Positions 22,740-42,207 are shown, numbered from the whole stretch's first letter. The stretch is 63,919 bases of DNA, filler included, from Octopus bimaculoides (GCF_001194135.2; 6 parts of 6 records of this genome joined end to end with filler, not necessarily neighbours in it), one strand, 5' to 3'. Translations and numbers: made by a program. Notes: generated by a model not told the origin, from the sequence alone.

Positions 22740-22801
<62 letters not shown>

Positions 22802-23324
22802 TGTATATACGCACATATATATTATGCATATACATAGACAGATAAACATATAGACAGATATCTAGAGACGAAATAGCCAGAAAAAAAAATAAAGACAGTA
22901 AGTTAGTGCTGCATACACGTATGTATGTATGTATGTACACACAGATAAATAGTAAGGCATATACAGACTATCATTTAACAACAAGAAGGATAGACAAACA
23001 GAGAAATAGATGTTTAGCTTGCTTTCTGGACAGACATACAAACTGATAGATCAGTTATAATTAATGCTTACATATTAATGTAAGTATTAATGCAAGTGGT
23101 GCACCAGCATGACCGCAGCCACTTGGCTGAAACACATAAATAAATAAATAAATAAATATATGTGTGCATGTACATGTAAGACACACATACGTGTTTGTGT
23201 GTGAGTGCGCGCTTAATACAGATGAGATAGATCACATACATAGGTAGAAATTGTATTCGAACTAAAAAGAAAATAGAATAAATAAAACGAACTATGCCAA
23301 AATCTGAAACCATTATTATGATTA

Positions 23325-25098
23325 TGAGAGAGAGAGGGAGAGAGAGATTGGCAGAGATGGAAAATGACAGGATGTGTTTATAGTCAGAATTGATTGTCTA
23401 TAAAAGAACGAGGTAGATTAGTAATAACACTTACATTAGATCCCGATTCTAGTGACAGAAATAATTAAGTTTATACTGATGCTGTCCACTGTACCGGTAT
23501 CTCCTCGGCATGATATTCTCAGAGAGGACAGTGCGTGTTGTAGATTTCATAAGTGATGAGATTATAGTGATGAAGGAAACTGCGTGTTTGTTCTGTGAGG
23601 TGATGGTGGGAGATAAAACAGATAGAGAGCGGGTAAATTTTAAAGAAAGAGAAAGATTAGTGTTGGTGAGGTGTGAGATGGTAGAGCGAGTAATACTTAT
23701 ATGTGGGGAGAGAGAGAGAGGGGCATAGTAAGAGATTGAATTTGTGTGTATGCTGGAGAGAGATTATAATGTGGTAGGAGGTAGTTATACGAAGAGCGAA
23801 AGAGAGAAAGAAAGACATACACAGAAGACAGTGAAAGAGTAAGACAGAGAAAAAGAGAGAGAGAGAGAATGTGCAGATGAGTGTGTGTGTGTGCTCCCTG
23901 AGATTATAGAAAATAGTAATGATAGAGCGGGTGGTTTTAGAGTGAAAGAGAGAGACAGATAACTGTTTGTGAGTTGGTTATTCGTAGAGCGAGTCATAAA
24001 TATATACAGAGAAACTGAGTGTGAGTGAGTGAACGTTTTATAAGGTGGAAAAGATGTATGTGATTTATGGAGAGATGGAGTTTGAGTATGTTGTGTGTTC
24101 CGTAGAAGCCTTCTCTTATAATTCCATTTATATCTAGAATATTAAATCGTCCCCAATACTTGATTAGTATTTTATTTTATTGTTGTTGACTACAGAAATA
24201 TGGAAAATCAAGTTGACCTTGGCGGAATTTGAACTCGAGAATGTAAAGGGATGTAACTAAATACCGAAAGCATTTTTACGCCTCTGGCAAACCACCGCTT
24301 ATGTGGTAGGAGTAAGTAAATAATGAGTGAGAGAGGGGGGAGAGAGTGACAGAGAGAAACAAAAGCGGTAGAGAGAGAGAGTGAAGTTGTGATTATACAA
24401 CTTTGGAGAGCAAATAGCGATAGAGAAATAAAGAGAGAGTGTTTGTTTTTAAGGTAAGAAGAGAGAGGGAGAATAAGAGAGAGTGTGCTTTGCGAGTTAG
24501 TAGTAGGCAGAGTTGACAGCATAATACAAAGAAAGGGGAAGAGAAAGAGAGAAATAGTGTACTTTTGTGAGAAATCGATAAGTAAAACAAACTGAGAGAG
24601 GGGTAATGAGGTGTAGTGAAAGTAGCGTACTTTGCAAGGGGAGTGAGTGGTAGATAGAGCAGAAAGAGCGAATAATAAATACAATAGGGGTGGGAAGAGA
24701 GGTGGTGGTATTATATGAGTGGTAGTAGGAGGTTTGTAGCGAAGCGAGAGAAGGAATGAGAAAAGGTGCATTGTTTATGGGAGTAATAGGAAGAGGAAAT
24801 TAAATGAATAATAGAGAGGTAGATGGATAAGACTGGAGGGAAGAAAGAGAAATAGTCATTCGTGTGTTGGCAGAAGATAAAAATAAAAGAGGTAATAGTT
24901 CTATAGAGGAGTGGAATTTGTGAATTGGTAGGTGTCATAAGGACAGATGCATGGAGATATACTGAGTGAGGAGGAGAAGAGTGGCACCTTTGAGGAGCGT
25001 TCTGCATGACTACAGGGTAGTCACACATCTCTGCATAATCAAAGCCGATATAAATGTTGATTGGTTGTTGTCATACACAGAGGGAATGGCAAGAGAGG

Positions 25099-25133
<35 letters not shown>

Positions 25134-25300
25134 TAAAAGAGAGATTGAAAGTGAGTTAACATACGGGGCATGATGGCAGGCAATGAGTGAATGTGAGAGA
25201 ATGTATCAGACTTCGGAGAAGAACGAAGGGGAAGAGGAGATGGGGAAAAAAAGGGAGAGGAGAGAGTTAAATGACGGAGTAATTATGGCAGGAGGGAGTT
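23325..25300 (+). repeat. About 2 kb purine-skewed (A/G-rich) degenerate low-complexity tract
   Basis: Strong G/A excess and C depletion on +; recurring GATAGAG(AG)CGGGT and GTAGAGCGAGT.ATA about 300 bp apart (23620-23700 vs 23920-24000). Confidence 0.75.
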
Positions 25301-26131
25301 ATAGAAATAAGAAACTTGCTTTTAAGGCTGTCTTCTATTTTTTTACATGTTTCAGGGATTGAACTGCAGTCATGCTGTGGCACTGCCCTAAAGGGTTTAG
25401 GTCGAACAAATCGACCCAGGACTTATTTTGTTTTACATCTGGTACTTATTCTATCGGTCTCTCTTGCCGAACCTCTTAGTTATAAGGACATAAACCAACA
25501 CCGGTTGTCAAACAATGTTGAAGAACAAGCATACACTTTACAAACACACACAAACACACCCACATTCACACACGTTGATCGAAATTTTGGGACAATACAG
25601 AAAATGCCGATTGGGAGTTGGGGTTGGTAATCTTAAAAGCCAACTGGTGATAATCACAAACAATATTTTTATCTTATTAAACCTCCTCAGTGATGTATGT
25701 TGTCCTCAGGTATTATTGCCCGAGTTTCTACAATCTGCATTGCCTCTCTACCAAGCAAAAATTTCACTCAACTGATCGTATCAAGGATATTTACCTTGTG
25801 TCTGCTAACTGCTCGAATAATTAACTCACTTCTCTAATTCCTCCTCCTCTTTAACGACCATTTGCTTCTGCAAAGCCAGCTCTATGGCAAGCCAACTATT
25901 TTATGTTACTTCCAACAGAAATTTAGTGAAAATAGTGTTGTACTTGATATCAACATAGCTGAGATCAACTGAGTGTCTGGCCTGTGAATCTCCACGTAAA
26001 CTGCATGTCTATTGGCTCCACTCATTTCTTGCCTCTTGGATCACAAACTTCTTTTCAGATGGCACTGTCATAGCATGTGCCAATTGAACTCTTTCTGCAC
26101 CATACTTTATCAACTCATTTGCCACGTTTCA

Positions 26132-26551
26132 TTCTTCACAAATCTTCTCCCAATCTTCATCTACGTACAGCTTATCATCGACGTTAATGATGGCCGCGTC
26201 GGCATCGGCAACGTTGACGTCAACGTCGGCAGTGTTTGCGTCAACGTCGGCAGCGTTTGCGCCGGCATCGGCAGCGTTGGCGTCAACGTCGGCAGTGTTT
26301 GCGTCAACGTCGGCAGCGTTTGCGTCGGCATCGGCAGCGTTGACGTCAACGTCGGCATCGGAAGTGTCGGCCGTGTTTGCGTCAACGTCGGCATCGGAAG
26401 CGTCGACGTTGGAAGCTGTGACATTGGAAGCGTCGACATCAGAAGCATCGGAATCGAAAGCATCGACGTCGGAAGCGTCGGTGTCGACGTATGAGGCGTT
26501 GGTGTCGACAGCATAGCCGTCGGCATTGGTGTCATCAACATCATTGTTCTT
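26132..26551 (-). repeat. GC-rich 21-bp-based minisatellite; ATG-less stop-free frame of 140 codons encoding (NAADVDA/NTADVDA/SDVDA)n
   Basis: Unit GCGTCAACGTCGGCAG(T/C)GTTT on +; manual translation between minus-strand stops at 26552-26554 and 26129-26131. Confidence 0.8.
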
Positions 26552-27369
26552 TCAACGTCCAAATTTCCATGCTTGCATGGGTCAGATAGAATTTGTTGAA
26601 GCAGATTGTCTACAGCTAATGCCAAATCTAAACTGGTTCCACAACGAGACAGTCACTCTCAGTTTGTCAGTTTGTGTTAACGATTTGGCAAAAAAAAAAA
26701 AAGAAAGAAAAAAGACTGATAGAATAAATACCAGATTTCCAATAGGTTTTAGGGCCTATTTTATTGACGAAAACCCTTCATGGCGGAGTTCCAGCAAGGC
26801 CACAATCCATTGATTGAATAGAGTAAAAGAATAACCCTATACAAGATTCAAGTGAGATCGACAATGCTATACTGTTTTCATGTCTATGACGGAGAACTCA
26901 GATCACATCCTCAGCCTAGCACTCCACCAATAGGTTAACGAACATTCTCTAATCTCAGGTCCATAGACGTGATGTCTCCTCCTCCTCCACGCCGCCACTA
27001 CTACTACTACTACTACTACTACAACAACAACAACTGCTGCGGATGAGATAGAATCGGTTCTTTGAGGTTGTAAAACGAATTTCTTACCATTTAGCTATGA
27101 TGCGTTCTGCGATACAAAGGCCCATCTTCCGCATAAAGAGTTTCACACTAATTCTACTTCAGATTTAATTTTACTGTACACTTATCTACGGAGTACTCAT
27201 CCACTCACATGCTAGTTCTTCTTTTTTTTTTTTTTTTGAGCGTGAACGCACGTGGCTTAGTGATTAGGGTATTTGACTCGCAATCGTAAGGTCGTGAGCA
27301 GTGGTGGCTCGTAGATAAAATTAGCGGAGGTGCTGCTTCAGAAAATTTTTAGCCATTTTCTTTAGATTG

Positions 27370-27691
27370 GGATCTTTTGGGTTTGACGGGCAACACTTGT
27401 TTTCTTAACGAAACACTTTCAAACTTGGAACACTGGTAGAATGTGTCATATAAAACAACTTTTTCTCTTAGCCTTCTTAACAAAAAATTGTACGTCGCAA
27501 GTTATTTCATGTTAAAGTTGTCGTATTTCTGTAATTTCAACCAATCACTGACGTCTATTCAGCTGAATACAGTTAGCGCTCTTTTGTAAACAATAATTTT
27601 TTGCCGGTGATACAAGTATACGAAGTTTGAAAGTGTTTCGGTACCAAAAACACTACATAAAAAAATGTTGCCCGTCAAACCAAAAAGATCC
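27370..27691. mobile_element. MITE with about 26-bp TIRs and an 18-bp subterminal inverted repeat
   Basis: GGATCTTTTGGGTTTGACGGGCAACA (27370-27395) / TGTTGCCCGTCAAACCAAAAAGATCC (27666-27691); CGAAACACTTTCAAACTT 27409-27426 inverted at 27623-27640. Confidence 0.88.
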
Positions 27692-27962
27692 AATTTTTAG
27701 CCATTTTATTAAGATTGTGTAAAAGAAAACAAACATATATATATATATATATAAAATTATGCATAAACTAGCCACTGCCGGGTAGTGTGTTTAATTTGTT
27801 CACCGAACACCGCCATGAATACCCCTTGTTTTCCAAAGAATATAAGCACGTATGTATGCATATTTTTCAAAGAATAGAAACATGTATGATGTATAAGTGC
27901 AGGTTTGTATGTTTTATTTTTTGTATGCATTCTCAAGCATATAGTTGCATATCTAAACATGC

Positions 27963-28190
27963 TCATATAAATTTAAACTTCTGGAAAGTTTTACAGATTT
28001 TTACAGTTCCAGTGATGGAATGGATCTGTAGTCTTCGAATTAGCTTTCTCCTTTCTGGTTCTGAGAAGCCTGATTTCTCAAGATTGGTATTTAGGCAGTG
28101 TGTTACATATCCTAGGGCCTCAATAATCACAGGTATAAACCTAAACTTGTAATCTGGATAGAATAACTGCAGATTTTTCAATAGTTCAGT
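27963..28190 (-). mobile_element. RLE-type LINE extreme C-terminus (third family)
   Basis: YPDYKFRFIPVIIEALGYV..LQIHSITGTVKICKTFQKF* parallels the IPIIVGALG..QKIALLGTAHILRK end of the R4-type copies. Confidence 0.65.
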
Positions 28191-28899
28191 GTAGGTGTTC
28201 TCTTTTTCACTGATCTTCAGCTATATGTTAACATCCGCAGGCTCCCTTCTCTATTTGTGTGTGTGTGTGTGTGTGCGTGCATTTGTAGCGCCTCTTTTGT
28301 TTATTTTAGCAGCTTGAGATTATCTCCAGAAATACGAAGCGATCGTATAGAACAAAGCTTTTAACCACCAGCAAAGTACCAAATTTATACTGTACAAGGG
28401 AAATAACTTCAACAAGTAGAAAAGATTACACGAGTGATTTCCCTTGCTTTCATTTTAACTTGATAACTACGTTATTCATTCATTTCTCGATGTGGCGAGC
28501 TGGCAGAATCATTAGCAGGCTGGACAGTGGTATTTCGCCCGTCTGAGTTCAAATTCTGCCGAGGTCGACTTTGCCTTTCATCCTTTCGGGGTCGATAAAT
28601 TAAGTACCAGTTACGCAGTGGAGTCGATGTAATCGACTTATGCCCCCACCCAAAATTTCAGGTTTTGTGCCTACAGTAGAAAGGTTATTCATTCATGAGT
28701 CGTCAATGGGATGTCTCTCTCTCTCTCTCTCTCTCTTTCTCACACACACATACTTTGTGTTCTAGCCATAACCATCTTATATTTTCCCGGGCAAAACGAA
28801 GGCGTTGCTTTGTAGGATAACACAGGAGACGCGCCGGAACAACCACTACGACTCGAGGACAGGTGTAAATGTTAGTGAGTTTATTTGTATGAAAGTTGG

Positions 28900-29555
28900 A
28901 TTTAGTGACGTGTTAGTGGTTGGATTATTCGGTTCACGATCGTAGGGTCGTGAGTTCGACTCCTGGCCTCGCAAAGCACTTCATTTCACACTGTTCCAGT
29001 CTGTTCAGTGGGAAAAATCGAGTAGTGCTTGTAATTCGAAGGAATTGTCTCATTCAGCCTTGTTACATTCTTGACAATGCGTGTCTGTAGAATACTCAGC
29101 CACTTGTATGGCGAGCTGGCAGAAACGTTAGCACGCCGGGTGAAATGCTTAGCGGTATTTCGTCTGCCATTGCGTTCTGAGTTCAAATTCCGCTGAGGTC
29201 GACTTTGCCTTTCATCCTTTCGGGGTCGATAAATTAAGTACCAGTTACGTACTGGGGTCGATATAATCGACTTAATCCGTTTGTCTGTCCTTGTTTGTCC
29301 CCTCTGTGTGTAGCCCCTTGTGGGCAGTAAAGAAATAGGTATTTCGTCTGTCTTTACGTTCTGAGTTCAAATTCCACCAAGGTCGACTTTGCCTTTCACC
29401 CTTTCGGGGTCGATAAATTAAGTACCTGTTGCATGCTGGGGTCGATCTAATCGACTGACACCCTCCACGCAAAATTTCGGGCGTTGAATTACACGAACAG
29501 ACCGTCCGTGCCATCGATTGGATCAATTGAAACTTGTGTCGTCGTAAGCGACGGC
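28900..29555 (+). mobile_element. Nested SINEs: tRNA-headed family C host with two family-A copies (29108-29340, 29341-29480) inside
   Basis: Host reads ..CTCAGCCACTTGTA at 29095-29108 and resumes CGTTGAATTACACGA..GTCGTCGTAAGCGACGG at 29482; these are contiguous in the intact copy at 38900-39265. Confidence 0.75.
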
Positions 29556-30317
29556 CTGTCAATGGGTGTACGATAAGTTAACTGGTACGGGAATTAGTTT
29601 ATTGGTATATCAGTATAAGAATTCATTGCACTGGTGTAAGAATTAGAAGTTCTTTGATATAAGTCTTGGCAGCACAAGGTGTGGGGGGGGGGGTCTTGGT
29701 GACGTCAGTACTGCAAGCATTATTGATTTATGTGTTTGTGGTGTAAATATTTGTAGGACTATTCAGATGAAACGATGTATGTGATAAGTGCAGAAGGTCT
29801 TCATCAGAAATTTAACATTTGGGCTAATTTTCGCACATTCTTTTAGTCTTTTATTCTTTTACTTGTTTCAGTCATTTCAGTGCAGCCATGCTGGAGCACT
29901 GTCTTCAGTCAAACAAATCGACTGCAGGACTTATTCTTTGTAAGTCTAATACTTATTCTACCAGTCTCTTTTGGGACATAAATGAGGATGATATTTTGAT
30001 GGAAGGTTATAATTTGGACCACATAAATTCAGGAAGTCTGTGTCACTGAATTCTCAAAAGTGCTTAAATAGTTTTTTAATCTTGTTTTAGTCTTGGAAAT
30101 ATATTTATATATCACACAGAAAATAACACAAAATCAATAAATATAGGATTATGGCTCTATATTTTATTATATTTTAAAGCCGAATAGATATATAAGATAT
30201 TTGTTTAATGATATTTTAGAGGAATTAGTAAAGTATTGATATACAAGTTAAAATGTTAATGAATTTTTTTCAGTTATACAATAATGAAGGTTTTAAACAT
30301 GAAATAAACAGAAATTG

Positions 30318-31067
30318 TTAAGCAGCCATTTTGTTTTTTATGAAGTTTGTAGCTTTTTCAAGTAACTTCTCTGAATTCATTGGTTGCATATTCTGAGATT
30401 CCAGCCAAACCATTGCCTTGTTTTCCATTAATTCCCATTCACAACGCTGAGAAACTAATTTTTCTCTTAGTACAGCAACAGCAATAGCTGTAGCCCATAT
30501 TTTATCACTAACGGATGGATTCTCATTGTTCAGGTCCTTAAGAGAAATATTGAGAGCTTGAGCCAATTGATCATCTAGATTCCAGAAACCATAGAAAGCT
30601 TGTAGGTCAACCAAGCATGTTAAAATGTCCTTATTTGTTGTCTCAGCAGAAATAGAGGATTCTGCATCACTCACATTTAACGATCTTGTAAATGTCCGAG
30701 ACAAGCAACTGACACCCATAGAATCAGTAGCTTCAATTTTTGAATAACATTTCTGATTTGCTCGCTTAATCATACATGGTAAAATCTCTTTATTTTTTGT
30801 CCTAGAAACGAATTTCTGAGACAAGCAATTCAAATTGGCAAATCCAAAGTCAGAAGGCACAAAATCAGCACTGGAATCCACACTATCAACATTTATAAAT
30901 TCAAAGTCTTCATCTAAATCAAGATCGGATTTATTGACTGGGCAACTGATAGCTTGTGGAGGTGGTGGTACTGGTGCTGGTGAAGAGGAAACCGCGCAGG
31001 GCATTGGCTTACATTCTGGAATATTCTTCTTCAAACCAACAAAACTTGTGTACTTTGAAACCAAATT
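30318..31067 (-). CDS. VWA5A: VWA5A-like protein copy B, C-terminal 249 aa only (5' part lost in gap)
   Basis: NLVSKYTSFVG..LVDLQAFYGFWNLD..WATAIAVAVLR..EWELMENKAMVWL matches VWA5A-family C-terminal motifs; no stops or introns; about 95% nt identity to copy A over the last 108 codons. Confidence 0.8.
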   Translation of the reverse strand, partial: NLVSKYTSFVGLKKNIPECKPMPCAVSSSPAPVPPPPQAISCPVNKSDLDLDEDFEFINVDSVDSSADFVPSDFGFANLNCLSQKFVSRTKNKEILPCMIKRANQKCYSKIEATDSMGVSCLSRTFTRSLNVSDAESSISAETTNKDILTCLVDLQAFYGFWNLDDQLAQALNISLKDLNNENPSVSDKIWATAIAVAVLREKLVSQRCEWELMENKAMVWLESQNMQPMNSEKLLEKATNFIKNKMAA

Positions 31068-31167
31068 NNNNNNNNNNNNNNNNNNNNNNNNNNNNNNNNN
31101 NNNNNNNNNNNNNNNNNNNNNNNNNNNNNNNNNNNNNNNNNNNNNNNNNNNNNNNNNNNNNNNNNNN

Positions 31168-31210
31168 GCGGACCCCCTGTGGTCCGCGGACCACAGTTTG
31201 AAAACCCCTG
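31168..31210 (-). mobile_element. hAT (Charlie-like) element terminus
   Basis: Reverse complement begins CAGGGGTTTTCAAACTGTGGTCCGCGGACCAC; flank CTCTACAT resembles the Charlie NTCTAGAN target; remainder in gap. Confidence 0.6.
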
Positions 31211-31215
31211 CTCTA

Positions 31216-31950
31216 CATGATGATGCAAAATCCATGTGCAGAGACATCACTACTGTCTTCAGTAATGTTAGTGCGGTTGATCTGGTTAGTATCAGTGACG
31301 TAAACCCTCAACTAACCATATCTAGCATAACTTTTGTTGCTCCTGATATCCTAACAGAAATAGATAAGATCAAGCACAACTCGGCAGTAGGTCCCGATAA
31401 GTTACCGGCCACTGTCCTGAAGATGTGTCGACACCAACTTGCGCCCCCTCTAGCTGAGCTCTGGAGAAATTCACTTGACGCAGGCTACATTCCTGATCAT
31501 TTTCTTTCCTAGTCTGTCGTTCCAGTCTTAAAAAAGAGAAACAAATCTCTTGCAGCGATCTACCATCCAATTTCACTCACTTCTCATATCATTAGAGTAT
31601 ATGAGAAGGTGGTGAGATCATGAATAACTCACTTCCTCGAAGACAACAGTCTGCTGAATCCCAAACAGCATGGTTTCCGTGATGGCAAGGACTACCTGTC
31701 GCAGTTTCTACACCATTTTGATGACATCTTAAAAGCTTCGGGAGAAGGCTCCAACACTAACGTCATACAGCTTGATTTCAGCAAGGCATTTGATAGAGTG
31801 GAACACAAAATCCTGCTGAAGAAACTGTCCAACATTGGAGTCCGTGGAAAGCTGCTGCAGTGGATAAAGTGTTTCCTGACAAACAGAACCCAACGTGTTG
31901 TGTTTGAGGGGATATGATCTAGCTCAACCAAAGTCATTAGAGGTGTTATA
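31216..31950 (+). mobile_element. CR1/Jockey-group LINE reverse transcriptase fragment, pseudogenised
   Basis: [59 protein letters not shown] with in-frame stops; ends before the QG/YADD motifs. Confidence 0.88.
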
Positions 31951-32349
31951 TTTTCTTAGAGTTTTCCATCTTCTAGTTTAGATACATTTGTCAGGGCTAG
32001 AAGTCCAACCTGTAATCATCCACAAAATGTAAACCTGTGCACAAAAACAGAAATTTGTAAATCCTCGTATATATAAATGTAATTGAATGGCTTTTGCCTC
32101 TCTTCGCTTCAAACATTTGACAGGTCTTTGACAAAATTTACATCTTTCATTGCATCCAGATAGCATCCTACCCACCAAGCAGTCTTGGTGTTTTTGCCAG
32201 TTTAGTCACTGACAGTTCAGATATACACAAGTGGCAATCATGATTGACCTGCCATATTATATATGAATTAATTGTGTTGCTAATTTGATCTTTGCATGTA
32301 ATTATCATCAGAATCCTCAATAATTCTATCTTTTGTTTGGTTTCTTTCA

Positions 32350-32373
32350 TTTTTGTATATTTTTTCTATACAG
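32350..32373 (+). promoter_or_regulatory. 3' splice acceptor of a 5'-UTR intron, 16 nt before the copy A ATG
   Basis: TTTTTGTATATTTTTTCTATACAG| ending 32373; ATG at 32390. Confidence 0.6.
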
Positions 32374-32389
32374 GTATCTTAAATACAAT

Positions 32390-34607
32390 ATGGATTATTT
32401 AATGGTATTTGGAATCATCTGCGAAAAGAAAACAAAAGTTTCTCTTCTCTATGCCACTCACACGATATCCATTAATGGATTTACATCACATGTCAACATC
32501 GAAGCTGAATATATAAATGAAAACCAACACAAGACAGAAGCTAAGTTTGTTTTCCCTGTGGAAGAAGACAGTGCCGTATATAAATTTGAAGCTAAAATTG
32601 GTGATGTCCATTTAGTAGCCAAATCTAAAGACAAAGATGTTGCCAAAAAGGAGTACAAGGAAGCTGTAGATAAGGGACAGTCTGCCATTTTGTTGCGAGA
32701 GACCAGCACGTCTGGCGATATTTTTGAGTATAGCTTAGGTAATATTCCAGCTAACGAAAAGATCCATTTACAAATATGCCTTGTTTCTGAGCTTTCTTGT
32801 GAAGTTGATGGGGCAGTGAAATTTTATATGCCATTTGTGCTTAATCCCAGATATGNNNNNNNNNNNNNNNNNNNNNNNNNNNNNNNNNNNNNNNNNNNNN
32901 NNNNNNNNNNNNNNNNNNNNNNNNNNNNNNNNNNNNNNNNNNNNNNNNNNNNNNNNNNNNNNNNNNNNNNNNNNNNNNNNNNNNNNNNNNNNNNNNNNNN
33001 NNNNNNNNNNNNNNNNNNNNNNNNNNNNNNNNNNNNNNNNNNNNNNNNNNNNNNNNNNNNNNNNNNNNNNNNNNNNNNNNNNNNNNNNNNNNNNNNNNNN
33101 NNNNNNNNNNNNNNNNNNNNNNNNNNNNNNNNNNNNNNNNNNNNNNNNNNNNNNNNNNNNNNNNNNNNNNNNNNNNNNNNNNNNNNNNNNNNNNNNNNNN
33201 NNNNNNNNNNNNNNNNNNNNNNNNNNNNNNNNNNNNNNNNNNNNNNNNNNNNNNNNNNNNNNNNNNNNNNNNNNNNNNNNNNNNNNNNNNNNNNNNNNNN
33301 NNNNNNNNNNNNNNNNNNNNNNNNNNNNNNNNNNNNNNNNNNNNNNNNNNNNNNNNNNNNNNNNNNNNNNNNNNNNNNNNNNNNNNNNNNNNNNNNNNNN
33401 NNNNNNNNNNNNNNNNNNNNNNNNNNNNNNNNNNNNNNNNNNNNNNNNNNNNNNNNNNNNNNNNNNNNNNNNNNNNNNNNNNNNNNNNNNNNNNNNNNNN
33501 NNNNNNNNNNNNNNNNNNNNNNNNNNNNNNNNNNNNNNNNNNNNNNNNNNNNNNNNNNNNNNNNNNNNNNNNNNNNNNNNNNNNNNNNNNNNNNNNNNNN
33601 NNNNNNNNNNNNNNNNNNNNNNNNNNNNNNNNNNNNNNNNNNNNNNNNNNNNNNNNNNNNNNNNNNNNNNNNTATCTTCAGTTTGTCTCTCGGCTAAACA
33701 TGGTGAAAACAATAAAGAATTATCCTTTATTTCAGTTCCAGAAAGGCTGCCCTGTATTTTCAGTGAAGAAAAATTAATCCTTTATCTAGTTTTGCATGAA
33801 ACTGAGACTAGTTGCGAAAATGTGAAATTGAATCTTTGTGGTAAAATTGGTGAATCAGACTTTTCACTTGACTTTGAAGCAAGTTTGTTCAGACAGATTG
33901 ATCAGGAAATGACAATACACCGTCTTTGTGTGAGAAGGAAAATACAGGAATTGGAATTAAAAGAAGATCTGGGTAAAGGTGATGAAATAAAATCAGAGAT
34001 TATTGATTTGGGTACAGTGGCTAATTTGGTTTCAAAGTACACAAGTTTTGTTGGTTTGAAGAAGAATATTCCGGAATTTAAGCCAATGTCTCCCAGGGCT
34101 TTCTCTTTAGCACCAGCATCACCACAATATTTAGGAGACTATGAATGTATAAGTTTTGATCATGTAGATTCCAGTACTGATTTTGTGGATTCTGGCTTTG
34201 ATTCTGTAGATTCTCGCTGCTTGTCTTGGACATTTAGAAGATCATTAAATGTGAGTGATGTGGAATCCTTTATGTTTTCTGAAACAACAAATAAGGACAT
34301 TTTAACATGTTTGGTTGATCTACAAGCTTTCTATGGTTTCTGGAATCTAGACAATCAATTGGCTCAAGCTCTCAATATTTCTCTTAAGGACCTGAACAAT
34401 GAGAATCCATCCGTTAGTGATAAAATATGGGCTACAGCTCTTGTTGTTGCTGTACTAAGAGAAAAATTAGCTTCTCAGCATTGTGAATGGGAATTAATGG
34501 AAAAGAAAGCAATGGTTTGGCTGGAATCTCAGAATATACAACCAATAAATTCAGAGAAGTTACTAGAAAAAGCTACAAACTTCATAAGAAACAAAATGGT
34601 TGCTTAA
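32390..34607 (+). CDS. VWA5A: VWA5A-like protein copy A (VIT domain, probable vWA domain in the gap, C-terminal domain), about 740 aa, apparently one coding exon
   Basis: VIT motifs EAKFVFPVEEDSAVYKFEA..AKKEYKEAV..DIFEYSLGNIP..PFVLNPRY; after the gap VPERLPCIFSEEKLILY..IHRLCVRRKIQELE..LVSKYTSFV..LQAFYGFW. The 817-N gap (32856-33672) is about the size of linker plus vWA. vWA/MIDAS not visible; frame across the gap is unverifiable. Confidence 0.82.
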
Positions 34608-34840
34608 CAATTTCTGTTTATTTCATATTTTAAAACTTTCATTACTGTATAACTGAGAAAAATATCATAACATTTTAACTTGTCTATTAATACTTTTACT
34701 CTACTAATTCCTCTAAAAGATCAGTAAACAAATATTTAACATATCTATACAGCTGTAAAATGTAATTAAAGATAAAACCATAATCCTATATTTACTGAAT
34801 TTGTGTTATTTTCTGTGTGTAATATGAATATATTTCTGTG
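34608..34840 (+). other. 3' UTR of copy A, homologous to 30090-30317 (copy B), with poly(A) signal ATTAAA at 34765-34770 (AATAAA in B at 30163-30168, -)
   Basis: By-eye alignment of the two UTRs; homology ends about 70 nt after the signal. Confidence 0.7.
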
Positions 34841-34870
34841 ATTGAAGAACGGGTGTGAAAATAAGTTTAA

Positions 34871-35141
34871 CCCTTTAGCATTTAAACTGGCCATATCCAG
34901 CCAAAAATATTCTGCCTGTTTTGTGTTCAAACTGGCCGGATCTGGTTTCTCACACCAACCCTACAATATCATTTTTAAGATTAACAGCTACCTCATCAAA
35001 ATCTCATAGCTACAAGATAATGCATGATTAGTTCAAAACAATGTGAATAAAAAAGCATTAATTTTGGCAGAATAATTAATTCGTTTTATTGGCCACAAGG
35101 GCTAATATCAATTAAAAACATGTAATGCGAACACTAAAGGG
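34871..35141. mobile_element. piggyBac-like MITE
   Basis: TTAA|CCCTTTAG ... CTAAAGGG|TTAA: TIR starting CCC with TTAA duplication (34867-34870, 35142-35145). Confidence 0.8.
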
Positions 35142-36421
35142 TTAAAGACATTCAAACTGAGTACTGAATATTTAACACTGCATTGGAACCGATTTATTAT
35201 TATTATTTTTTTTTTTTTTAGTTGTAGGTGCAATAGTCACTAATCTTGGTTTTGCTTTTTATGCTTTTAATATCCATAAAATAATGACCAATTAAGAAAT
35301 AATATTGATCAAATCAATTACATACTCTACACACATTTCTAGCCCTGTACATGTTTTGTGAATCAGTATTTTAATTTAACTATCTGCATAGCATATCTCG
35401 TCTTTTATCCTCAACTCATTTTGGTCGTTGAACTGCAGCCATTCTAAAGCACAACCTAAAAGGCATGTTTTAGTTAAACATATCAACCCCAATACTCATT
35501 TATTTTAAAATTGGATAGTTATTCCATCAGTCTCTATGGTAGAACAGCTAAATTACGCGTAGGTATGATAAATACACACACACACACACACAATGGGCCT
35601 CCATCCAGTTCCTGCGTACCAAACACACCTACAAGGAATTGGTTTGCTCTCAGCTATAATAGAATACACTTGCTGAAGGTGTTGTGTCGTGGGACTGAAC
35701 CCTAAATGTCATGGTTGTAAAGTGAGCTTCTTAACAACACAGCCATACTTCTGCCTATATACAGCCATGCTTGTGTCTTGGACACTACATTCTCCACAAT
35801 GAAGGTCAGTTATCTATCAACTTTCTCTTCAAGAATAGATGTTCTTTAGTGCGTTACCATGGCTAATTAATAGCAGCACCATTTTGGCCTGGATTTGCAG
35901 CATATTAGGAGGTCAGTGTACTTGATTCCACGCAAAAAAAAAAATCAGAGTTTTTGGGGGATTTTTTTTTTTTCTAGTGAAAATCGTGCGGGGTAAAGTA
36001 TCAAAATTTACCCCAAATTTTAGTACTCACGGGCTTAGTACTCTAAACCTCTGAAAGCAGTACCCCAACAAGGCCGCAGTTCAATGATTAAAACAAGTAA
36101 TTGAATAACAGAATATACATTGCAATGCATGCAGGACAGACCCCTTGCATTGAGGAAACCCCCTCCAGGATTTGATCCCGAAATCTACAATGACAAGCAT
36201 TGCACACAAGATATATACGATTAGCTATCAACACCAACACTACTTGGTTTAGCTTATTCACTGCTTGGTTTAACTATGATAATATTATTTCAACAAGGAT
36301 ACATATTGCATCCATCTACACCAGATTAAACTATTTCGTTTCGTAATTAGTTTTTACATTCCTCATTTTTTTTGGGGGTTGGGGGGTTCCAATCGAAATA
36401 TGTTTATTGGAGCATATCACG

Positions 36422-36452
<31 letters not shown>

Positions 36453-37024
36453 TTGTGTGATAAACATATAACAAAAAACCACACAAGTAAACAAAAACAT
36501 GAGCGAAGAGGAGAAAAAATGAAATAAAAAGTAAGAAAAATATCAATTCAACACCAAGAGGTCCCAAGTGGTTGTAGAAAGAGGTTTTCGTAATTGTCAA
36601 TATAAACGTATTGTGGGCGTTGCCGGCCTTTCCATTCATTCATTCTCTCTCTCTCTCTCTCTCTCCGTTTTCCCATTCTCTGTCTAATTTGTTGTTGGTG
36701 ACGCAGTTATATAATATGGTTCATAGTCTGTTTTGATATTATACTTAAAATCTGTTTTATTAATAAATTTACGTACCTCACTTAACCCGGATGCTCATAC
36801 TTTTCTGCTGACACATTTTATCTGGAGAACAGAACTTCTAAGCAATTAAGATTTTCTACCAAACAGTAACATTACTTTCCATCCAGAACTTAACATATTC
36901 GCAGTTCCGTTTCGTGCAGTTTATTTTGATAGAAAAACAAAAAACAAACAAAACAGGTTATACACACGTTGTTTATTTTATCCTCTTGAATTATAAACCC
37001 ATTATTAGCAGCAAAGAACTTTAA

Positions 37025-37073
37025 ACTAATCAACGAGACATATTTCACCTTTTATTTCTCTCAACAGGTAAGT
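37025..37073 (+). promoter_or_regulatory. Candidate recursive splice site (zero-length exon)
   Basis: ACTAAT branch-like motif 37025-37030, pyrimidine tract TATTTCACCTTTTATTTCTCTC, AACAG|GTAAGT with AG at 37066-37067 directly followed by a consensus donor. Confidence 0.45.
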
Positions 37074-38899
37074 AACAACTTACTGCGATAATTTGCAAGT
37101 TTCTTCATGGACCGTAATAATTGACAAATGACTTAATCTAAACAACGTCCTTTTCTTATAATTGATTTGTGCTCATTAGTTTATCAGTTGCTTTTAAACG
37201 TATTTTTTTTACCCCTTTTTAAAATTTTTTTCCTCGAAGTTGGTGATATTGCGTTTACTTTTCTGTAAAAAGTTGCTAAAACATCAATATTGGACTCCGA
37301 TCATCATTGACAAGTGACCTAATCAATATTTATTTTCTCTATAAATGTTTTGTATTCATTATTTGGAAAATGCTTTTTAATTTTTTTAATTCAGACTTAT
37401 ATTTTTCATCTTGTTGTTGAAGATATATTTTCCACTTTAAATGCCGATGTTATACAAGTTACTTATCAGAAATTATAGGATGTCGGTATTGACGCCTCCG
37501 ATTTTCATTGCAATTCGCTTTCATTTTCTTTATTGACACTGTATTTTCGTTTTACTTTTTGCATCCCTAAACTGCATGTTAACCCATTGTTTTGCCATGG
37601 GGCCTGTTGTTACCTTTCTGTTATCATTTATTCATTCCAGTCATTTGATTGTGGTCATGCTGGTGCACCGCCTTAAGGAATTCTAGTCGAATGAATCGAC
37701 AAAGTAATTTTTGTCAGTATACAGCTTTCGTCGGTTCGGGTCGGGAGACGCACCTATGTGATAGGTATCTTTTACTTGTTTCAGACATTTGACTGCGGCC
37801 ATGCTGCGGCCATGCCTTGAAGTGTTTTAGTCGAAACCTAGCACGTATTCTATCGGTCTCTTGGTGGGGGTAAAGTGCAAGCATTTTTTTTTTTTTTTCA
37901 AAACTTTCTAACGTTTTCGATATAGGAGATTACAAGCGATTTTGCTTAAATAAAAACACATTTTCAAAATTTTTAATTNNNNNNNNNNCCCTCTCACCGC
38001 CCCAATTTTTAAATTTTTCACTTTTTTAAAAATATCTTTTCTATTTAATCCTCGTAGAAAACTACGGTGATTACGAATATGGTAAAAAGAATTTTTTTAT
38101 TTCAAATTTTTTTTAGGAAACACACACACACATCCGGGATGTGCTAGGTGTGCGGTTCACACCGATCGAAAATGGCAAATTCGTTATAAAAATATTAATC
38201 TTACTTATTAGTTTAATCACAAATCGCAGTGGAAAACTTTTGCAATACCTCTGCTTGAAATTTGGTGGAATTGGGTGTAGCAGCTCCCCTAATACAGCAA
38301 GCACCACACACACAGAGAGAGGTTCGTTGCAGTTCAACATGATATAAATTACACTATTTAACAAAATTTTCGGTATGAATTATTTACTGTTTCTGTATAA
38401 ACATAACACGAAGATATTTGTGGCATGGCATCAAGATTCGAATAGATACGGAAAGTTGAGATTTAGAGAAAAAGAAGAAAAAAAAGGCGTTAAGCTGAGA
38501 AAAAGATATTTTCCGGTTGTTTAGCTGTTATTTCTAGCATATCGAATCTCCTGGTGAGGGCTTCATATTTTTTCGTCTGCTGTTTTAGGAGAAATCTACG
38601 CATGCGTAAAACGTACGGAGTTTTATGCTTTTGGAAAGCGAAAAGTGGGTCACTCGCTCACATATATATTTATGTTATTGTCAGTAATTTGGGTTACATA
38701 CTTATTAGTTTGAATCATCCTGGCGAAAAACTCCTCGTATTTTCCATATATACATAGACACCTACACTAAAGAAAACACCCAGAAGGTTTGGGTTGCTAA
38801 AATGCAAGACACCCCTCTAAGGGGTTGCGCAGTTGAACTGAATCCGTAACCATGTGATTGGGAAGCAAGCTTTCTACCACACACCTACGCCTCGCTAGA

Positions 38900-39265
38900 G
38901 TGGAGGCGCAATGGCCCAATGGTTAGGGCAGCGGATTCGATTCCCAGACCGGGCGTTGTGAGTGTTTATTGAGCGAAAACACCTAAAGATCCACGAGGCT
39001 CCGGCAATGGATGATGGCGAACCCTGCTCTATTCTTTCACCACAACTTTCTCTCATTCTTTCTTCTTGTTTCTGTTGTGCCTGTAATTCAAAGGGGCCAG
39101 CCTTGTCACACTGTGTCACGCTGAATATCCCCGAGAACTACGTTGAGGGTACGCGTGTCTGTGGAGTGCTCAGCCACTTGCACGTTAATTTCACGAGCAG
39201 GCTGTTCCGTTGATCGGATCAACTGGAACCCTCGTCGTCGTAAGCGACGGAGTACCAACAACAAC
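38900..39265 (+). mobile_element. SINE family C (tRNA head with short deletion), near full length
   Basis: GGAGGCGCAATGGCCCAATGGTTAGGG A-box region, TTCGATTCC B-box, body ending GTCGTCGTAAGCGACGGAGTACCAACAACAAC; homologous to 49350-49660 (-) and 55845-56165. Confidence 0.85.
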
Positions 39266-40024
39266 GTCTCGTAAGATATCTACTTCGACTATAATAAACC
39301 GTTTTGTTTTATTCAACGGTTTTTCCCAAAATTGATCCATTTTCTTTTTTTTAAATAGATTTTTCAACCTTTTATCCTTTTTTTTTTCTCACATGTTTAA
39401 CTTCTTTGCTCTAAGAAGTTGTTAAAATGTATATATTGAACTGCGGTAACTGTTGTCGGGTGACCAAATCAATGTTTTGTGCCTAGAATTTCTCAGTTGC
39501 GTTGCATCTATGTATATTCTCATCAATAAGACTCATTGATCGGTTGTTCGGATTCGTGTTATCGTAATTCCATGACAACACTGATCAAGTAACGCTAATG
39601 ATCAAGCCTACTTCATTCGTGCGCCTTTTCGTATATATAGGTTAACATTGTCCAGTGTATATTTCTTTATTTAAGACGGTAGGGTGAGATTTCAAAAGAA
39701 TTGGCTGCTATTTCGCGCAAATTGAGCAACCTCTAAGGAGCTGCGTCGTTTTCACTGAAAAACTTCTCTCTCTCTTTCACTCTCTCCCTCTCACACGCAC
39801 ACTCTCAAACAGACGTTCCGAATTCACGCACTCTGTGTGTGTGTGTGTGTGTGAAAGAGAGAGAGAGAGAGAGAGAGTTTTGTATTATATAAAGCTTCTA
39901 AAATAGCAGAGGTAATAAAAATTGCGTAAAGATAGAACTTAAATAAAAGCGAGGCGATCTTCCGATTTAAGTCGCGTACCTGTCAAACATAATACCAGCT
40001 GTATTATGTATTCGTTGTAAGAGG

Positions 40025-40405
40025 ACTGTGTGGTAAGAAGCTTGCTTCCCAACCACATAGTTTCGGGTTCAGTCCCACTGCATGGCACCTTGGGCAAGTG
40101 TCTTCTACTATAGCCTTGGACCGACCAAAGCCCTGTGAGTGGATTTGGTAGATGGAAACTAAAAGAAGCCTGTCGGGTGTGCGTGTTAGTGTTTGTCCTC
40201 CCCACCACCACCACCACCACTTGACAACCAGTGCTGGTGTTTTCATCGCTGTAACTTAGCGGTTTGGCAAAAGAGACTAATGAATAAGTACCAGACGTAA
40301 AGGAAAAAGAAAATAGTTCTACGATCAATTCATACAAGTAAAAAAATTCTTCAAGACGATGTCCCAGCATGGCTACAATCTTAACTAAAACAAAGAAAAG
40401 TATAA
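40025..40405 (+). mobile_element. SINE family B, full length
   Basis: Same head, body and tail blocks as 1839-2250. Confidence 0.8.
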
Positions 40406-40447
40406 ACGTTAAATGGACTTTCTTTCGGTATACCCCTCAGAACTGTC

Positions 40448-40900
40448 AATAGACCAGATAAAGTTGTCAGAGATCATGAAGGAAAAAAAATGCTTTCTAA
40501 TTGATGTATCAATACCAGCAGATGACGTTTCCCTAAAAGAAATGGAGAAACTTTCAAAATACAAAGACCTGGAAATAGAGGTAACTCGAATGTGGAATCT
40601 AAAAACAGAAACAATTCCTATCATAGTAGGTGCCTTAGGTATAATAAAAAAATATTCAGACAAATACATAACAAAAACACCAGGACTTACAAATATATAT
40701 AACATACAGAAAATTGCACTACTGGGCACTGCACACATCCTACGCAAAACACTTTCAATACAGTAACCATAAGAGCATCACAGCAAACCACAGCACATAC
40801 CCAAGGCACACAGAGCTGTGCTCGGTAGTGAAGTAAAAGCACGTTATAAAAATAAAACTACTGAATAATAATAATAATAATAGTAATAATAATAATAATA
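40448..40900 (+). mobile_element. R4/Dong-clade LINE 3' end with RLE domain and (AAT)n tail
   Basis: NRPDKVVRDHE (frameshift) KKCFLIDVSIP..KEMEKLSKYKDL..IPIIVGALG..LRKTLSIQ* = PD-(D/E)xK nuclease; 3' UTR matches 21719-21790. Confidence 0.9.
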
Positions 40901-41112
40901 TTTTTTTTATTGCCCACAAGGGGCTAAACATAGACGGGACAAACAAGGACAGACAAAGGGATTAAGTCGATTACATCGACCCCAGTGCGTAACTGGTACT
41001 TAATTTATCGACCCCCGAAAGGATGAAAGGCAAAGTCGACCTCGGCGGAATTTGAACTCAGAACGTAAAGACAAACGAAATACTGCTAAGCATTTCGCCC
41101 GGCGTGCTAGCA
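40901..41112 (-). mobile_element. SINE family A abutting the LINE (AAT)n tail
   Basis: Reverse complement of the 19238-19475 type sequence. Confidence 0.85.
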
Positions 41113-41843
41113 AACATAATGAGCCAATTCAATATAGACTATGGGGTTTACTGACCTGCTACAAGTAACAAGCACCTCTCTCAAGTCATGACCTGCAACC
41201 TTTAAAACATAGGAAGAACACATAGGATGATATAGTCTAAGATAAACAGTGTCATGAGAGATGGACTGATTGTGACTAGAATTTATTTTTATTATAGTTT
41301 TGTCTGTTTAGGTTTGACATAAGTTTCAGCAACCATAACATAACAACAAGAAACAGTAACTAATTCTCCCTCATATCACACTCAGCCATGTCTGAACGAA
41401 GAGGATCACACTAAATTATGTAGACCTAGATAAACTGCGCATGTACAGAGATGGGATTGTCATGGGCAATATACTTTTCACTATTATTGTGGTGGAGCAA
41501 GGTCAAGCTGGAGCAAAATATGATCACCTCTGACAACATTGTCATCATTTGTGTACCATCTTTACTTTATTCACCTGCACAACCAGCGGCAACAATAATG
41601 TTAGTAGTAGTAATAGTAGTGGTGGTGGTGGCAGCAGCAGGAGCACTATATTCCCCTCATCCCCATGCCTCCAAGAACGTTATCAGCATCACTACAGTCA
41701 ACAGACCTGGTTCTTAGAAGTCATGTTTACTTAGAATTAACATTTCTCACCAAAAAATAAAATAACATTTGAAATGCATCATATATATCATTTCTAAATA
41801 AGACGTTTCTCCTTCTATTTTATCTAGCACTTTCATTGCAAAC

Positions 41844-42207
41844 ATGAATAAGCTAATGGTATTTGGAATCATCTGTGAAAAGAAAACAAAAGTTTCTCTT
41901 CTCTATGCCACACACACGATTTCCATTAATGGATTTACGTCACATGTCAACATCGAAGCTGAATATATAAATGAAAACCAACACAAGACAGAAGCTAAGT
42001 TTGTTTTCCCTGTGGAAGAAGACAGTGCCGTATATAAATTTGAAGCTAAAATTGGTGATGTCCATTTAGTAGCCAAATCTAAAGACAAAGATGTTGCCAA
42101 AAAGGAGTACAAGGAAGCTGTAGATAAGGGACAGTCTGCCATTTTGTTGCGAGAGACCAGCACGTCTGGCGATATTTTTGAGTATAGCTTAGGTAATATT
42201 CCAGCTA
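41844..42207 (+). CDS. VWA5A: VWA5A-like protein copy C, N-terminal VIT domain only (cut by scaffold end)
   Basis: Protein identical to copy A from residue 4 to 121; only 4 silent differences; own acceptor TTTCTCCTTCTATTTTATCTAG| at 41827. Confidence 0.8.

Follow-up and report, generated by a model that had tools for sequence, protein, structure and literature searches.

Vertebrate VWA5A (also known as BCSC-1 or LOH11CR2A) is encoded by a multi-exon gene and consists of a VIT domain, a vWA domain bearing a MIDAS (an adhesion site that depends on a metal ion), a hybrid or VITpt2 region, a disordered loop and a helical C-terminal domain (CTD). Vwa1 of Dictyostelium, a partner of the F-box protein FbxwD, is a cytoplasmic VIT-vWFA protein. 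A long disordered loop and a helical CTD are known for both Vwa1 and human VWA5A, and docking of the CTD on the vWFA domain, possibly with an autoinhibitory effect, has been predicted (Boland et al., PMC10539598). Here, we examined a stretch of Octopus bimaculoides DNA (63,919 nt in six parts of genome GCF_001194135.2, joined end to end with filler), which is referred to as the window and supplies the coordinates used below unless another source is named. The window holds three partial VWA5A-like (VIT-vWA-CTD) genes of a local cluster, designated A, B and C. The best explanation overall, to which we assign a probability of about 0.75, is that these belong to an octopod-specific tandem array of VWA5A/BCSC-1-like genes that have a single coding exon, a body homogenised by gene conversion and a linker that escapes it.

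The octopod proteins have the same domain layout as vertebrate VWA5A and share 31–37 % identity with the fish and amphibian proteins over the full length. They differ in that the coding sequence is a single exon, the genes form a tandem array evolving in concert, and the linkers fall into two charge classes. The loop and CTD layout of Vwa1 is also seen in the octopus model, where docking of the CTD is suggested only by a high predicted template modelling score (pTM), and nothing here points to an SCF partner. The VIT-vWA part of PARP4 (vault PARP) gave the best sequence match to a solved structure (E=2e-37, residues 35–587), and ITIH4 and ITIH1 were also among the matches in PDB. However, the octopus proteins lack the BRCT domain, PARP catalytic domain and vault-interaction region of PARP4, and their last 108 residues (the CTD) have no sequence match in PDB even at E≤10. 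The best structural match to the model of the O. vulgaris orthologue P0002 was ITIH1 (PDB 6FPY; Foldseek E=2e-31). In contrast to the ITIH heavy chains, which are secreted, cleaved and covalently linked to glycosaminoglycan, the octopus proteins have a different C-terminus and appear to lack a signal peptide. The latter, and with it a presumed intracellular location, is judged from the P0002 model, which starts five residues before the first VIT strand, and not from a signal-peptide predictor, as none was run. A further Foldseek match covering most of the P0002 model (E=3e-27, template modelling score 0.50) was to a flagellar microtubule-doublet protein of Trypanosoma brucei (PDB 9e5c, chain 4s), a hint that an association with the cytoskeleton is possible for intracellular VIT-vWA proteins.

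The genomes of Sinanodonta, Mytilus, Branchiostoma, corals and decapod crustaceans also contain many VWA5A-like genes each, in some cases with locus tags that are consecutive on one contig, but the one bivalve gene checked, from an oyster, is multi-exon. The octopod genes are already publicly annotated as 'VWA5A-like'. Literature searches found no paper on the array in octopods, on the single coding exon and concerted evolution of its genes or on the two classes of linker, and none on VWA5A together with octopus, mollusc, intronless or hemocytes.

Genes A, B and C

The gene pieces were defined from a listing of open reading frames (ORFs) and from tBLASTn with the full-length P0002 (758 aa). 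The first piece of gene A (32390–32855, + strand) encodes residues 1–155, which make up the VIT domain (Pfam PF08487, E=5.5e-29), plus the first base of codon 156, and is 97 % identical to P0002. After an assembly gap, A resumes at 33673–34607 (+ strand) with residues from approximately 446 to the end and the stop codon; 33675–34604 comprises 310 codons equivalent to P0002 residues 446–758, and these 310 residues have no Pfam match. This part includes a hypervariable linker of 79 aa of the acidic class (34056–34292, + strand) and the CTD (34293–34604, + strand), which has no indels among the Octopus copies and differs slightly in Argonauta, at or near the end. The 3′ untranslated region (UTR) of A (34608–34836, + strand), which is shared with B, has ATTAAA at +157. 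Gene C starts at 41844 (41844–42207, + strand; 121 codons at 41844–42206), and its residues 1–121 are again VIT (PF08487, E=4.2e-26). It resumes past a gap of 1271 N just beyond the piece, with its own basic-class linker and CTD.

Gene B is on the opposite strand (30318–31067, − strand) and is represented by the last 249 codons and the stop, from approximately residue 562 to the end (ORF 31067–30321, P0002 residues 562–758), being cut by the contig end at a gap of 100 N. Its linker (30633–31034, − strand) is 134 aa long, of the acidic class, and contains an internal duplication. The 3′ UTR of B (30096–30317, − strand) is common to A, C and the O. vulgaris copies, and has poly(A) signals at +108 and +149. 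An AATAAA or ATTAAA is found in the 3′ UTRs at +149 to +157.

No stops or frameshifts were found in the visible coding pieces of A, B or C, and their vWA domains fall in gaps and are not visible in the window. In P0002, VIT and VWA are both present (VWA_3, E=2e-22), and the MIDAS residues D275, S277, S279 and D373 are invariant, with T346 nearly so, across 25 homologues. The best named matches are all VWA5A or VWA5A-like. The identification of the paralogues as VWA5A-like in the initial annotation is corroborated by the VIT matches, the architecture of the orthologue and the best matches. The codon counts given there (155 and 311 for A, 249 for B and 121 for C) were exact, as were the intact frames.

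A and B share the last ~390 coding bases and the 222–229 nt 3′ UTR at 90.6 % identity, in agreement with the shared UTR and poly(A) signal noted in the initial annotation. In the last 108 codons, there are 10 non-synonymous and 6 synonymous changes, the same numbers as had been counted by hand, giving 0.040 non-synonymous (dN) and 0.098 synonymous (dS) substitutions per site. With a dN/dS of ~0.4, selection on this segment is purifying or relaxed, not diversifying.

The orthologue of B is the O. vulgaris copy Ov_8, which is intact (835 aa) and is the last gene sampled in the O. vulgaris array. B, its 3′ UTR and 680 nt of flanking sequence (29415–31067) are colinear with the Ov_8 locus (L010, 35865–34146) at 82 % identity. 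The region upstream of A and the A N-terminus are also best matched by Ov_8 (93 %), and the A linker is a shortened Ov_8-type linker. The dN/dS of the B tail relative to Ov_8 is 0.33–0.48, and this, together with the open frame, argues that B is a working gene, now or recently.

Copies in other octopod genomes

A long-read O. vulgaris chromosome (OX597828.1, 19.280–19.386 Mb) contains at least eight copies arrayed in tandem over 106 kb, and all of them are on the same strand. Five are intact single ORFs of 758–835 codons, and the other three are broken by frameshifts, deletion or a stop. Two of the broken copies, Ov_4 and Ov_6 (19,315,467–19,317,541 and 19,346,479–19,348,553), have the same frameshift, 70-codon deletion and premature stop, and therefore a larger block that included a pseudogene was duplicated. 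In O. bimaculoides, there are at least four cluster copies, the fourth being P0008, with the N-terminus MDCL..., and there is also a short-linker paralogue (P0010) on the same chromosome, 3.6 Mb from the cluster. Several copies were found in O. sinensis. Argonauta hians has one gene of each type, cluster and short-linker, ~1.1 Mb apart. Hence, a local expansion of the family, as first proposed, did occur, and the numbers in O. vulgaris and O. bimaculoides exceed one or two genes. Neither B nor C is a haplotype or assembly duplicate of A, as they have their own linkers, upstream types and 3′ flanks, and each has an O. vulgaris orthologue.

A single coding exon and a likely 5′-UTR intron

The gene span is equal to 3×(aa+1) for P0002, P0010, P0009, P0012 and P0015, indicating a single coding exon, and this structure was found in Octopus, Argonauta and one distant relative (P0015). 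The state is not shared with the outgroup mollusc checked, the oyster Saccostrea, whose homologue (P0019) spans 10.9 kb and gives at least 14 tBLASTn blocks, i.e. at least 14 coding exons. The stretch corresponding to the gap in A is also uninterrupted in every orthologue from better assemblies.

The genes had been described as intron-poor, and this term suits them better than intronless, as every copy has an acceptor-like site just upstream of its ATG. In all 15 copies examined, a polypyrimidine-AG of this kind precedes the ATG by 9–27 nt, and in each of the cluster's two upstream types the distance is exactly 16 nt ('ctatacag/gtatcttaaatacaat ATG' and 'tatctag/cactttcattgcaaac ATG'). The conserved 'D-type' sequence upstream of A (32077–32373, + strand) ends with a polypyrimidine tract and AG (32372–32373), a likely 3′ splice site of a 5′-UTR intron, and the conserved 'N-type' sequence upstream of C (41109–41827, + strand) ends in the same way (AG at 41826–41827). 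Because the motif is conserved in every copy, a 5′-UTR intron is likely. The existence of three O. sinensis transcript accessions for one identical protein, and of an Argonauta 'isoform X3', also suggests a spliced non-coding leader.

The loss of the coding introns is one older event that preceded both the split between the short-linker and cluster genes and the Octopus–Argonauta split. In-place intron loss by recombination with cDNA typically spares the 5′-most intron. No multi-exon parent was recovered, there being no cephalopod protein among the best 120 of 707 matches to a canonical-looking query (P0018).

Concerted evolution of the constant regions

In the constant regions, dS is 0–0.08 among paralogues of the same species and 0.08–0.30 when O. 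bimaculoides copies are compared with those of O. vulgaris. Across species, however, the copies pair by their linker classes, by the two upstream types and by their 3′ flanks. The duplications therefore predate the species, and gene conversion has homogenised the constant parts. Exchange within the array is indicated by the occurrence of all four combinations of upstream type with linker class. In Argonauta hians (BAAFZT010000042.1), dS in the VIT region is 0.17 between the two paralogues 1.1 Mb apart, compared to ~1.0 relative to Octopus, although their linkers and tails are clearly of two different subfamilies, and this suggests long-range gene conversion. Between species, dN/dS in the constant parts is 0.15–0.23 by four methods, and the proteins are therefore under purifying selection.

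The variable linker

A constant scaffold with one variable segment had been recognized in the initial annotation, and this description proved apt. In the Octopus copies, length varies only between 'KYTSFVG' and 'KDIL', where the linker has 38 aa in the short-linker paralogue and as many as 159 aa in Ov_8, and the Argonauta copies have just one or a few additional residues elsewhere, near or at the C-terminal end. The segment with the length variation and the elevated dN/dS is roughly 80–175 residues long. The linkers are either acidic, with a net charge of −3 to −15 (including A and B), or basic, with a net charge of +4 to +8 (including C). As both classes occur in O. bimaculoides as well as in O. 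vulgaris/O. sinensis, they are older than the split between O. bimaculoides and O. vulgaris. No nucleotide similarity was found between acidic and basic linkers, and the idea that the basic linker is a frameshifted acidic one was ruled out, as the alternative frames have no similarity.

The linker indels are in frame. A 21-nt in-frame tandem duplication (DSVDS motif) in the A linker (34178–34218) shows that slippage is one route of length change, and a larger internal duplication is present in the B and Ov_8 linkers. Dense patches of differences that look like conversion from other cassettes are seen in the linkers even when O. vulgaris is compared with its sister species O. sinensis. Linker identity is 37–68 % in the tandem cluster, compared to 87 % in the single-copy short-linker paralogue, at similar overall divergence.

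In five pairs, linker dN/dS was 1.3–3.4 by four methods, and in the A-B and A-Ov_8 pairs it was 0.6–0.7; these values come from uncertain alignments with conversion patches present. When four separate pairs were pooled, pN/pS was 1.8 (Fisher p=0.001), and the comparison of the linkers of Ob_C and Ov_2 alone gave p=0.007.

An AlphaFold model of P0002, made with 25 homologues, has a mean predicted local distance difference test score (pLDDT) of 81.8 and a pTM of 0.82. Residues 577–654 have a pLDDT of 27–36, i.e. <50, compared to ~90 elsewhere, and are followed by a confidently modelled helical bundle (657–757; pLDDT ~90), to which the tails of A and B align without indels. According to the model, the variable segment is a loop, predicted to be disordered, that connects the body with the CTD. 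The constant scaffold with a variable segment is consequently a property of the whole family that is exaggerated in the octopod array. Because the segment is the family's already described disordered loop, fast change is expected and is not a signature of recognition genes.

Assembly of the locus

The part of the window from 22740 to 42207 is a 100 % match to O. bimaculoides chromosome CM046615.1 (GCA_001194135.2) at ~10.688–10.708 Mb. Runs of N are present at 31068–31167 (100 N), 32856–33672 (817 N) and 37979–37988. Closure of the gaps using the version 2 chromosome assembly failed. It consists of the same contigs with the same N runs, and therefore the chromosome-scale version closes no gap and is a re-scaffolding of the same short-read contigs. 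The contig breaks in A, B and C are all inside the part of the gene that is near-identical among paralogues, and the best explanation for the three gaps and the odd position of B is collapse of the short-read assembly across the near-identical constant regions.

The gap in A (32856–33672) replaces ~867 nt, which encode residues 156–445 and include the vWA domain with its MIDAS site. Of nine intact full-length octopod copies, eight have exactly 290 codons in the missing part (870 nt, 867 of them in the gap) and show no indels relative to one another, and the short-linker copy of Argonauta (AhS) has 289 codons. The initial annotation had remarked that the gap is about as long as the missing domain, and the 817 N do fit a continuous exon given the expected 867 nt, although an estimated gap carries no frame information (817 is not a multiple of 3). 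The closeness of the two figures also favours the pairing of the two halves of A.

B and A are divergent as scaffolded, as originally described, but the arrangement depends on a short-read scaffold join and is possibly an artefact. The B contig ends inside the gene at the 100-N gap, the next contig begins inside a degenerate long interspersed element (LINE) reverse transcriptase, and all O. vulgaris copies are on the same strand. For these reasons, the head-to-head orientation of B and A, the truncation of B and the pairing of the A halves are not secure, and the first two may be scaffolding artefacts. The reverse-transcriptase fragment (31168–31940, + strand; Pfam RVT_1, E=5e-15) lies between B and A, has two in-frame stops and is outside the gene family. 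It starts exactly at the gap beside B, and the NCBI model XP_052829410.1 fuses it with the VIT exon of A. Two gene models of the region, P0004 and P0025, are chimeric.

Alternative explanations

The initial annotation viewed the cluster as a diversifying family of the recognition or defence type, and a version of this would be a cytosolic sensor or restriction factor-like repertoire in which the linker is a specificity surface under positive selection. The elevated linker dN/dS in most orthologous and paralogous pairs, the significant pooled and Ob_C-Ov_2 tests, the retention of two charge classes across species, the low linker identity in the cluster relative to the single-copy paralogue, the local expansion in both O. 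vulgaris and O. bimaculoides and the multiplication of VWA5A-like genes in bivalves, amphioxus, corals and crustaceans are all in keeping with it. However, the variable part is predicted to be disordered, with no fold to present a binding surface, and the same loop is variable across the whole family. No receptor domain or known immune domain is present, a signal peptide is apparently lacking, the closest relatives are the intracellular VWA5A/BCSC-1 and the VIT-vWA part of PARP4, and no paper was found that ties VWA5A to invertebrate immunity. In addition, dN/dS near 1–2 with patchy conversion between diverged cassettes fits relaxed constraint, and the A-B and A-Ov_8 linker pairs fall below 1. 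We therefore regard the proposed defence role as unsupported and consider a family of this type unlikely. In its most specific form, a cytosolic recognition or restriction-type repertoire with an effector scaffold preserved by concerted evolution and a tether loop that positive selection and cassette shuffling diversify for target specificity, its acidic and basic classes being retained across species, it is improbable.

It is similarly doubtful that the locus consists mostly of decaying copies and assembly artefacts, with one or two functional genes, B a dead 5′-truncated fragment beside a LINE, and the size of the family inflated by short-read contigs that are collapsed or duplicated. The end of B at a contig end next to the LINE fragment, the three broken O. 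vulgaris copies, the chimeric gene models and the failure of the version 2 assembly to close any gap could be taken in this way. But the visible frames of A, B and C are all open, the B tail has a dN/dS below 0.5 relative to Ov_8, and the linkers and flanks of B and C are distinct and have orthologues in a long-read assembly, which also contains the five intact full-length copies. Furthermore, A and B diverge by 9 % and their flanks are not homologous, which is more than would be seen in alleles. Repeated RNA-mediated duplication, such that each copy is an independent retrocopy, is least credible and can be set aside as very improbable. Homology between A and C does start within 3 nt of the ATG, that between paralogues ends 195–235 nt after the stop, roughly at the transcript end, and a LINE reverse-transcriptase fragment is nearby. 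Nonetheless, no A-run or poly(A) tail was found where paralogue homology ends (target-site duplications were not systematically searched for), the O. vulgaris copies are in tandem on the same strand, upstream sequences of 300–735 nt that are not transcribed are conserved as two types across copies and species, and O. vulgaris has duplicated two-gene blocks with identical lesions (Ov_4 and Ov_6). Duplication at the DNA level therefore accounts for the local expansion. The earlier proposal of a retro-duplicated gene that then expanded needs to be amended accordingly: the local copies arose by tandem DNA duplication, and at most one old retro event, before the Octopus–Argonauta split, can be retained.

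Several points weigh against the tandem array of conversion-homogenised, single-coding-exon genes that we favour. With three of eight O. vulgaris copies frameshifted, some of the copies in the window could be pseudogenes, and the vWA domains of A, B and C are presumed intact from the orthologues. Transcription and the 5′ exons are likewise read from sequence features, and a 5′ exon could not be placed in the window, as the sole candidate (~37649–37700) includes a stop and has AC in place of the GT donor. Intron loss in place via recombination with cDNA fits as well as retroposition followed by the recruitment of a 5′ exon. The linker dN/dS above 1 could reflect real positive selection instead of drift. 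Finally, knowledge of human BCSC-1 comes only from studies of its interactions and localisation, and the biochemistry of animal VWA5A is limited to interaction screens.

Other features of the window

The candidate 5′ exon is the homologue of 'exon 1' of an O. vulgaris model (P0017), and that first exon is not conserved in the window. A fourth copy near 37.6 kb, which was hinted at by homology with the first part of an O. vulgaris model, was rejected, as no tBLASTn match was found.

An intergenic block (40005–40449) has counterparts at two places in the O. vulgaris array, with 89 % conservation. It includes the 5′ end of a 117-aa ORF (40413–40766) that has an overlapping antisense ORF and no Pfam match, and could represent a conserved non-coding element or the relic of a transposon. 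A dispersed repeat of ~200 nt is found at 28493–28690, 29109–29486 and 40902–41109, as a tandem pair and an inverted copy. Many further copies are present in the O. vulgaris and O. bimaculoides loci compared. The repeat is probably a short interspersed element (SINE), though ARAGORN detected no tRNA-like part. A GC-rich minisatellite (26196–26509) has nested periods of 21, 42 and 63 nt, and gives rise to spurious long ORFs on both strands (26012–26625). Scans of the piece for tRNAs and Rfam families found nothing.

A probable history of the array and its significance

Each gene would be made up of at least one non-coding 5′ exon, an intron that stops ~16 nt short of the ATG and a single coding exon of ~2.3 kb. 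The coding introns would have been lost once, before the Octopus/Argonauta split, by retroposition or by recombination with cDNA, and the gene would then have multiplied by ordinary tandem DNA duplication and unequal crossing-over. Gene conversion would keep the body (residues 1–565) and the CTD near-identical within a species, with purifying selection maintaining function. The disordered loop would escape conversion and change by drift or under mild selection, by way of substitutions, slippage duplications that preserve the frame and the exchange of cassettes, and the acidic and basic classes would be the outcome. The proteins could act as cytosolic adaptors, in which the MIDAS-bearing vWA head would bind partner proteins and the helical bundle of the CTD would dock on the vWA domain and regulate the MIDAS site. 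The length and charge of the linker might tune this tether, or the loop might carry short binding motifs, and the paralogues would differ in these respects.

The locus is a concrete case of short-read cephalopod assemblies breaking inside recently homogenised paralogues. The array itself is a modestly interesting evolutionary case and opens no new kind of biology. It is nonetheless a compact natural experiment, in which the same scaffold is combined with very different tether loops in a poorly understood family, and it could help to test the autoinhibition model proposed for VWA5A/BCSC-1.

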